Positions 13,603 through 14,022 of a DNA stretch of 64,000 bases are shown piece by piece (positions within the stretch are counted from its first letter, which is position 1; each line of letters starts with the position of its first letter). Source of the DNA: Octopus sinensis (Eukaryota); the NCBI RefSeq assembly GCF_006345805.1, contig NC_043004.1, positions 72,354,001-72,418,000 of the forward strand, in the 5' to 3' direction. Made by a program: the position numbers and the translations under genes. Under the pieces are notes generated by a model, which made no database searches, had not been told where the DNA came from, and worked only from the letters and a program-made list of their open reading frames with translations.

Positions 13603-14022
13603 ATTAATAGTTATCGCCATACTAATATGGCAGTCTTATAATATAAGACTAAAGCTGTTGCTGATTATCTCCATGGGGCCATCGCCTCAAGCTAGCTATT
13701 TGACACACAACCTGCGTCCACTATAAACCTTCGAACAGGGGAGGTCAGCCGCTTCATCCTGCCAGTCAGACAGCTGCAGACATGTTTCAGGGTATTTGCC
13801 CTTTATCAATGCAGCGTAGTCAGACCCAGCAGGTGTCGCTACTGACTGTCCCTGTTCGAAGAATCTATTTACCTAGTTTCAGTGGAATACATCGACTTGT
13901 TTTCAATAATAGAAATATTAAAATTACAGCTTTAGTCTTATATTTATAAGACTGCCATATTAGTATGGCGATAACTATTAATTTCCAGTAACGCTGCCGT
14001 AATCTCCTTTAGAGAGACTTAG
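13603..14022 (-). mobile_element. Foldback (terminal inverted repeat) element with an apical hammerhead
   Basis: Inverted repeats ATTAATAGTTATCGCCATACTAATATGGCAGTC (13603) and its reverse complement (ending 13982). A 40-bp one-sided extension is shared with the element at 27611-28025. Confidence 0.8.
13773..13815 (-). ncRNA. Minimal type I hammerhead, U3:A8 core variant
   Basis: GCTGCA-TTGATAA-AGGG caaata CCCT-GAAAC-at-GTC-TGCAGC. It has a perfect 6-bp helix I, a 4-bp helix II, palindromic ACATGT helix III and a GUC site. Confidence 0.8.

Follow-up and report, generated by a model that had tools for sequence, protein, structure and literature searches.

The window, a 64,000-nt stretch of Octopus sinensis DNA with a G+C content of ~36% and dense microsatellites, holds LINE fragments (reverse transcriptase, AP endonuclease), a fragment of a Mos1-type mariner, and four copies of a foldback repeat, which we designate A, B, C and E. 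At 20395-22993 and 50469-54740 lie a fragment of a LINE reverse transcriptase, the mariner fragment (minus strand) and a longer LINE with AP endonuclease; exact look-up of the window's reverse transcriptase ORF gave no record. Upstream of copy A, a 470-bp tandem repeat (2.1 copies, 97% identical) occupies 12615-13600, with its units joining at (AT)n. Copy A is inserted in the (AT)n behind the second unit, and a diverged partial third unit lies beyond it at ~14270-14380 (48 nt at 96%, 13300-13347 versus 14331-14378). The 470-bp array is unrelated to the foldback element.

Anatomy of the foldback

The foldback of copy A spans 380 nt (13603-13982). Its terminal inverted repeats (13603-13641 and 13944-13982) are 39 nt long and 100% complementary, and the outer arms that contain them are identical at 56 of 57 positions. 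The 380-bp element with terminal inverted repeats reported in the earlier note is present, as are the two inner stems claimed for it (Table 1). Its right end needs correction: the note carried the element to 14022, but the foldback stops at 13982, and 14022 falls inside a non-palindromic tail that reaches ~14042. The left outer arm is homologous to copies B and D; the latter lies in an Octopus vulgaris locus, here called L001.

The minimum folds of copy A are rods on either strand (–180.4 and –171.7 kcal/mol), and the z-scores of the two strands against shuffles are –17 and –14. The rod is not uniform, as the middle of the right arm (13861-13925) shares only 48% identity with the left arm and stays unpaired with it, and the inner arms are only 70% identical. 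A 22-nt exact inverted match connects 13906-13927 with the end of the tail (14022-14043). This inverted tail copy within the right arm points to a more complex rearrangement.

Table 1. Coordinates of copy A, its relatives and their motifs (positions in the window unless L001 is given)
Feature	Position	Strand	Description
Left outer arm, copy A	13603-13659		39 nt perfect complement; 56/57 versus 13926-13982; read on the minus strand, putative 3' end of the hammerhead-bearing unit, ending ...GGCGATAACTATTAAT
Left arm, middle and inner	13660-13772		75-80% identity to B and D arms
Inner stem TTCGAACAGGG	13730-13740		Within left arm of copy A
Type I hammerhead-like motif	13773-13815	-	Tip of copy A foldback
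Right inner arm	13816-13860		70% identity to left inner arm; on the plus strand, candidate start of a second, inverted unit, at or near the cleavage site
Inner stem CCCTGTTCGAA	13850-13860		Within right inner arm of copy A
Non-pairing right-arm segment	13861-13925		With the next two bases, ends in the 22-nt inverted tail copy
Right outer arm	13926-13982		Ends ...CTATTAAT; pairs with left outer arm
Non-palindromic tail, one end only	13983-14042	+	..TCTCCTTTAGAGAGACTTAGTAATTTTAATATTTCTATTA, then (TA)n and (TGTA)n; conserved in B, C, E
Copy E	23345-23690	-	Foldback; arms unrelated in sequence; same tail; flank AAAAGAT.TTTT
Copy B	27611-28047	+	Full rod and tail; ~70% identical to A
Copy B hammerhead-like motif	27771-27817	-	Core GUGAUAA
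Copy B flanking repeat GAAAAGAACATT	27599-27610 and 28048-28059		12-nt exact direct repeat
Copy C, distant relative	35860-36346	+	Arms 35864-36004 and 36147-36290 (141-144 nt), and tail
Copy C hammerhead-like motif	36076-36126	+	Core CCGAUGA, weak helix I
Copy D (Octopus vulgaris)	L001 9952-10176		Hammerhead motif on minus strand
Motif F	L001 18390-18438	-	Canonical CUGAUGA core, own 6-bp helix I
Motif G	L001 18187-18239	+	Core UUGAUGA, decayed

The apex motif and its relatives

The 43-nt motif claimed for the apex of copy A is there, a type I hammerhead-like sequence with a perfect 6-bp helix I (GCUGCA/UGCAGC) and the core UUGAUAA (Table 2). Helix II has 4 bp (AGGG/CCCU) and is closed by loop 2, CAAAUA; GAAA follows, then a helix III of A-U and C-G around AU, amounting to 1-2 bp with a palindromic loop, and then GUC. 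There are three helices around the core, with helix I open, as in type I hammerheads. We compared the motif with the conserved type I core (C3 U4 G5 A6 N7 G8 A9, G12 A13 A14, A15.1-U16.1, H17). Every conserved position is present save 3 and 8 (U3 at 13809, A8 at 13804); both are changed, and the resulting U:A keeps Watson-Crick pairing. Cleavage is predicted between 13779 and 13778. In the minus-strand rod of copy A, a hammerhead-competent fold lies only +0.3 kcal/mol from the best fold.

We set the motif against canonical type I hammerheads (Schistosoma Sm-alpha/N79, newt and axolotl satellite, amniote HH9; Rfam clan CL00010). Copy A shares with them the succession of parts (helix I, core, helix II, GAAA, helix III, GUC, helix I), the lengths of helix I (6 bp) and helix II (4 bp), the CAAAUA of loop 2 and the UAC immediately before helix I. 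Its helix III, like theirs, has 1-2 bp and a palindromic loop, a feature that implies dimeric action. For canonical metazoan type I hammerheads, the described dimensions are 6 bp in helix I, 4 bp in helix II and 1-2 bp in helix III, the last closed by a small palindromic loop (PMC4209133). Loop 2 and spacing are identical to those of the Schistosoma-derived N79, and the Rfam HH9 consensus resembles copy A from the bases before helix I to its closing strand. Copy A departs from this set in having U3:A8 instead of C3:G8 and A10.1-U11.1 instead of G-C, and it scores below every Rfam hammerhead model: copies A, B and C gave no match to these models at E≤10, and neither these three nor motif F reach the gathering score of a curated covariance model. 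Weak microRNA-like Rfam matches were set aside as hairpin or microsatellite artefacts.

Table 2. Segments of the hammerhead-like motifs in copies A to D and of two canonical type I references
Motif	Strand	5' of helix I	Helix I, 5'	Core	Helix II, 5'	Loop 2	Helix II, 3'	GAAA	Loop-3 segment	UC	Helix I, 3'
A	-	CUAC	GCUGCA	UUGAUAA	AGGG	CAAAUA	CCCU	GAAA	CAUG	UC	UGCAGC
D	-			UUGAUAA	GGGG	CAAAUA	CCCU	GAA-	CUAG	UC
B	-			GUGAUAA	GGAG	CAAACA	CCUC	GAAA	CUAU	UC
C	+			CCGAUGA	UGGA	CAAUGA	UCCU	GAAA	CAUGCG	UC
N79				CUGAUGA	GUCC	CAAAUA	GGAC	GAAA	C
HH9 consensus		UUAC	CUGCAG	CUGAUGA	GCUC	CAAAAA	GAGC	GAAA	C..G	UC	CUGCAG

A descriptor as strict as motif A itself (U3:A8, helix I of at least 6 bp, helix II of at least 4 bp, G:U pairs barred) found 0 matches in 200 dinucleotide shuffles of the window, and the loosest descriptor 0.22 matches per shuffle. 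From base composition, we estimate ~2e-5 strict matches by chance per window. This corresponds to about one per octopus-sized genome, so that a single window taken alone would leave the question of chance unsettled. What argues against chance is the canonical metazoan type I build together with the recurrence of the motif in relatives. A second, relaxed U3:A8 match (23479-23528, minus strand) lies in an arm of copy E and needs G:U pairs; we treated it as chance.

Five related motifs were found besides that of A, two in the window (B and C) and three in L001 (D, F and G). Copies B and C were found by BLAST inside the window. The apex match of copy C to that of A was equalled in 0 of 2000 shuffles; its centre, 142 nt, is non-palindromic and unpaired. 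Copy E has 83-nt arms, 89% complementary, around a 27-nt loop with no hammerhead at the apex, followed by ~80 nt of extra sequence and then the tail of A, B and C. L001 was reached through an ORF that runs across B, for which an exhaustive protein search gave one Octopus vulgaris protein; in a word-indexed protein database, the ORFs reading through A (55 aa) and B (82 aa) had no match. The protein, CAI9729092.1 (177 aa, "hypothetical predicted protein"), is the ORF at L001 10001-10534, which begins within copy D and crosses the arm and apex of that copy; the annotation is probably an artefact. Copy D is a single unit consisting of ~20 nt, the ribozyme motif, one arm and then CTATTAAT, truncated ~20 nt upstream of the ribozyme motif. 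We considered copy D as evidence that the apex had flipped relative to B and rejected this, as the effect is due to an 8-nt deletion in the left arm of B. The non-coding repeat family proposed in the earlier note is represented by B, C and E in the window and by D in Octopus vulgaris. Exact-pattern scans of viral and metagenome contigs for the terminal repeat and the apex gave no matches.

A covariance model built on motifs A, B, C and D found motifs F and G in L001, which face each other on opposite strands ~150 nt apart. Motif F lies outside any long inverted repeat or foldback, and its match to Rfam HH9 is weak, at 13.8 bits compared with a gathering score of 52. Downstream of F, CTATATTAAT is present.

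Over the six motifs, the 3:8 pair is U:A twice (A and D), C:G twice (C and F), U:G once and G:A once (in B). Standard pairs are formed in 86% of cells, compared to 35-54% in slid controls, and both partners have changed in 10 of 12 pairs; this set comprises six sequences only, of which A and D share ancestry, in an alignment fitted to the model. The helix I covariation seen in A, B and D follows from the palindrome itself. G5, A6, A9, A13, A14 and C17 are invariant, and G12 and U16.1 each deviate solely in the decayed motif G. The palindrome of loop 3 is CAUG in A and CUAG in D, with both sides changed and the palindrome, on which a dimeric helix III depends, kept.

The presence of U3:A8 in two independent copies, A and D, and its covariation with C3:G8 in C and F indicate a family trait. 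U3:A8 thus characterizes the subfamily of A and does not reflect decay of copy A, in agreement with the earlier reading of the double change as compensatory. That U3:A8 is a tolerated natural covariant, as had also been claimed, is documented: ~1,300 matches occur in Schistosoma Penelope-like elements (PMC4209133). The search for copies and covariation suggested at that time was successful in that copies exist and position 3:8 covaries. Defects are seen in the motifs of B (G3:A8) and C (C4, weak helix I). The apex motif is not a coincidence, given 0 of 200 shuffles and conservation with covariation in five relatives. We conclude that it truly descends from the type I hammerhead of animals.

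Tail and flanks

A conserved tail of 45-60 nt (..GAGAGAnTTAGnAATnnTAATATTTCTA..) follows one arm only in A, B, C and E, and is common to rod bodies that are otherwise unrelated (A/B, C and E). Its distribution marks out a larger group of repeats with hairpin bodies. Every arm has CTATTAAT, or a close variant of it, at its end. Within a copy, the arms are 88% (B), 90% (C) and 89% (E) identical, and between copies 75-83%. The arms within copies are plainly drifting, which would fit identity at birth. The ribozyme motif lies in the tail-bearing half in C and in the other half in A and B. Among these four copies, A and C lie within (TA)n, and B and E within A-rich DNA. The tail is absent from the window's LINE and mariner fragments, and no autonomous element carrying it (end ...GAGAGAnTTAGnAATnTTAATATTTCTATTA) was found within the window. 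Tandem Repeats Finder detected no tandem array of the element in the window, and each copy seen stands alone.

The 12-nt direct repeat of B encloses both foldback and tail, and a similar repeat, AAAAGAT.TTTT, is found at E. Target duplication, which the earlier note had put forward as a check, is supported by the repeat around B and weakened by a third copy of its AAAAGAACAT upstream. The three copies lie at 27548-27557, 27600-27609 and 28049-28058, with the upstream one 52 nt from B. Ahead of the upstream AAAAGAACAT lies a tail-like TAGAAATAAT, suggestive of a partial tandem remnant. The 3' flank of B resembles an internal segment of A (GAAAA.AA...ATTCCACT).

The one-sided tail, the position of B's repeat outside the tail, and the sharing of the tail by unrelated rods all argue that the inverted repeats are not transposon ends. 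Fixed short duplications abutting the terminal inverted repeats, as expected of a MITE, were not found. On the same three grounds, the description in the earlier note of a DNA-level terminal-inverted-repeat architecture as an unrecognized family is not supported; an inverted truncated copy, a one-sided tail and (TA)n targets are, moreover, known for Penelope-like insertions (PMC8557442). Copy A belongs to an octopus repeat family, of which it is a genuine though decaying member, and does not represent a new class of element.

The window's only Rfam match at gathering score is a 5S rRNA match (36531-36649, plus strand, 75 bits) ~185 nt downstream of copy C, which may be a 5S pseudogene or a 5S-headed SINE. 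About ten bases beyond it, 36660-36800 looks tRNA-like or SINE-like and resembles octopus SINEs; ARAGORN called no tRNA there.

Proposed head-to-head origin of the foldback

From the anatomy, the family, the hammerhead homology and the covariation described above, we infer a head-to-head origin, a route by retrotransposition and a Penelope-like partner. We lean, with moderate confidence, towards an origin of copy A as a fossil insertion of cDNA from a small, non-coding retroelement of octopus, with units head to head and a mobilizer that is most likely Penelope-like. The unit would read, from its 5' end, type I hammerhead, ~170 nt of body, CTATTAAT and an optional 60-nt tail at the 3' end. Copy A would then be two such units joined head to head: a left unit on the minus strand that extends through the whole ribozyme, and a right unit on the plus strand whose start coincides with the cleavage site or lies a few bases from it, and which bears the tail. 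This junction would place the ribozyme at the tip of a DNA palindrome, with both arms supplying a long helix I. Integration would have taken place by target-primed reverse transcription with a Penelope-like reverse transcriptase/endonuclease, and the family would be a relative of the animal non-LTR retrozymes. The hairpin shape most likely derives from two copies inserted head to head. Compared with the standard animal type I hammerhead, the ribozyme is a U3:A8 covariant. Any cleavage by it would need a dimer, since a helix III of 1-2 bp with the palindromic ACAUGU requires a second copy. Copy A itself is most likely an inert insertion.

Several features of known systems bear on this reading. 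In Penelope-like insertions, an inverted 5'-truncated copy lies by the main copy, a 30-40-bp tail is often present at one end only, targets are (TA)n, and hammerheads lie near the termini (Craig et al. 2021, PMC8557442). An inverted 5'-truncated copy and a tail at one end are likewise found in A, B, C and E, with an asymmetric centre in C such as unequal 5' truncation of the two units would produce. The octopus elements differ in lacking a reverse transcriptase or GIY-YIG ORF, in their units of ~200 nt, and in a tail of 45-60 nt compared to 30-40 bp. The minimal hammerheads of Penelope-like elements (Cervera and de la Peña 2014, PMC4209133), which include the Schistosoma Cercyon U3-A8 variant, resemble the octopus motifs in that U3:A8 is widespread in genome repeats and in that the motifs are mostly single and highly variable; they also form opposite-strand pairs 100-700 bp apart, and F and G in L001 are such a pair. 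They differ in that helix II is longer (7-8 bp), helix I is shorter and a bulged base precedes helix II, whereas the octopus motifs have the canonical build. Animal non-LTR retrozymes are small, self-paired, non-autonomous hammerhead elements with dispersed monomers and a suspected dependence on Penelope-like elements (PMC7229834; Li et al. 2026 preprint). Like them, the octopus family has a small, low-GC, self-paired non-coding unit with one type I hammerhead (Cervera and de la Peña 2020, PMC7229834). Retrozymes, however, come as tandem arrays that permit double cleavage and circles, whereas copy A is solitary and palindromic, with ends away from the cleavage site. Tandem units of 170-400 bp with one type I hammerhead each were not found among the octopus copies.

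A retroelement origin is favoured by the conserved one-sided tail of A, B, C and E, by the 12-nt repeat at B and the similar one at E, by the (TA)n surroundings of A and C, and by D as a single truncated unit. In a head-to-head pair, either half may be the longer one, which explains the ribozyme of C in the tail-bearing half; we preferred this simpler account to a flip-flop inversion between the arms as the cause of C's opposite ribozyme orientation. On the other side stand the lack of an Rfam hammerhead match on A, B and C and the 13.8 bits of F against 52. Ten of the largest ORFs of the window were scanned against Pfam without finding a Penelope-like reverse transcriptase with GIY-YIG; the reverse transcriptase that was found is LINE-like and lies next to an AP endonuclease, and no tail-bearing autonomous element is present in the window. 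The direct repeats at B and E open with an A-rich stretch. An A-rich start of direct repeats is associated with AP-endonuclease LINEs. Perfect outer arms combined with poor inner arms in A are not explained by simple decay. Finally, the junction is common to A, B and D, so the foldback must have been inherited whole at least once, which would also fit a rod-shaped RNA intermediate, or a template with its 5' end determined by self-cleavage.

A rival reading that we regard as unlikely is a SINE-like retroposon moved by a LINE. The tail would be a LINE-derived 3' recognition end, the RNA would be plus-strand with an inherited hairpin body, and the hammerhead would be an antisense relic without a role. 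The sharing of the tail by unrelated bodies (A/B, C and E) recalls LINE tails among SINE families, and this reading also accommodates the direct repeats of ~12 nt with an A-rich start around B and E, the simple repeats behind the tail in A and C, the LINE fragments with AP endonuclease and reverse transcriptase in the window, and the orientation of the ribozyme in A, B and D, antisense to the head-to-tail strand. It is opposed by the element's lack of a tRNA, 7SL or 5S-like head such as would supply the polymerase III promoter of a SINE: no tRNA and no Rfam small-RNA match was found in the element. Nor is the tail present on any LINE in the window. Copy D keeps the head side without the tail side, the opposite of what plus-strand 5' truncation produces, and both the arm likeness within copies (88%) above that between copies (75-83%) and the palindrome abutting the ribozyme core are left unexplained. 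A foldback MITE, that is, an ordinary DNA transposon with a coincidental hammerhead-like motif, would account for the perfect 39-nt terminal inverted repeats and for palindromic ATTAAT ends compatible with TA or TTAA duplication; a Mos1-type mariner fragment is present in the window, and Rfam calls no hammerhead. We nevertheless consider it very improbable. The apparent TA/TTAA duplication is part of the palindrome itself and hence uninformative, chance motifs are estimated at ~2e-5 per window (0 of 200 shuffles), and the motif is conserved with covariation in five relatives, one of them with a canonical core and no foldback around it. In four copies the conserved tail is found beyond the right repeat, and in B the 12-nt flanking repeat encloses it.

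The model of the earlier note, in which a rod-shaped viroid- or retrozyme-like RNA intermediate of ~380-440 nt has its pairing under selection and the ribozyme and the 60-nt tail as terminal loops, seems to us decidedly improbable. The extreme predicted stability, the small energy cost of the hammerhead-competent fold and an arm-ribozyme junction common to A, B and D despite 20-30% divergence speak in its favour. Yet within copies the arms match at only 88-90%, the central part of the rod in A is unpaired, C has its unpaired 142-nt centre with the ribozyme off-centre, E has a rod without a ribozyme and F a ribozyme without any rod. With a single ribozyme per copy and no tandem array, no circle could be excised, and the element's ends in the genome are at the opposite tip of the rod, not at the cleavage site. 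In the A/B/D lineage, the palindrome abuts the ribozyme core, and the inverted half starts at or within six bases of the cleavage site. This suggests a further possibility, quite unlikely in our estimate, that these foldbacks are footprints of in vivo cleavage before reverse transcription, or else that the whole rod is a selected, viroid-like RNA intermediate. In the former case, the inverted half would have been copied from a self-cleaved 3' product, with cleavage setting the 5' end of the template; in the latter, the U3:A8 ribozyme would occupy one loop of the rod and the tail the other.

For the favoured head-to-head insertion, the octopus family is of interest in several respects. It bears on the role of the very numerous hammerheads in animal genomes and on the integration route of retrozymes and Penelope-like elements. 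With its ribozyme exactly at the proposed head-to-head junction, the family offers a countable test, in which the 5' ends of templates can be compared with the cleavage site. It would also be a second animal lineage with a U3:A8 core as the family norm. For annotation, octopus foldbacks of this family are better not entered as DNA transposons, and CAI9729092.1 is an example of a predicted protein read through such a repeat.
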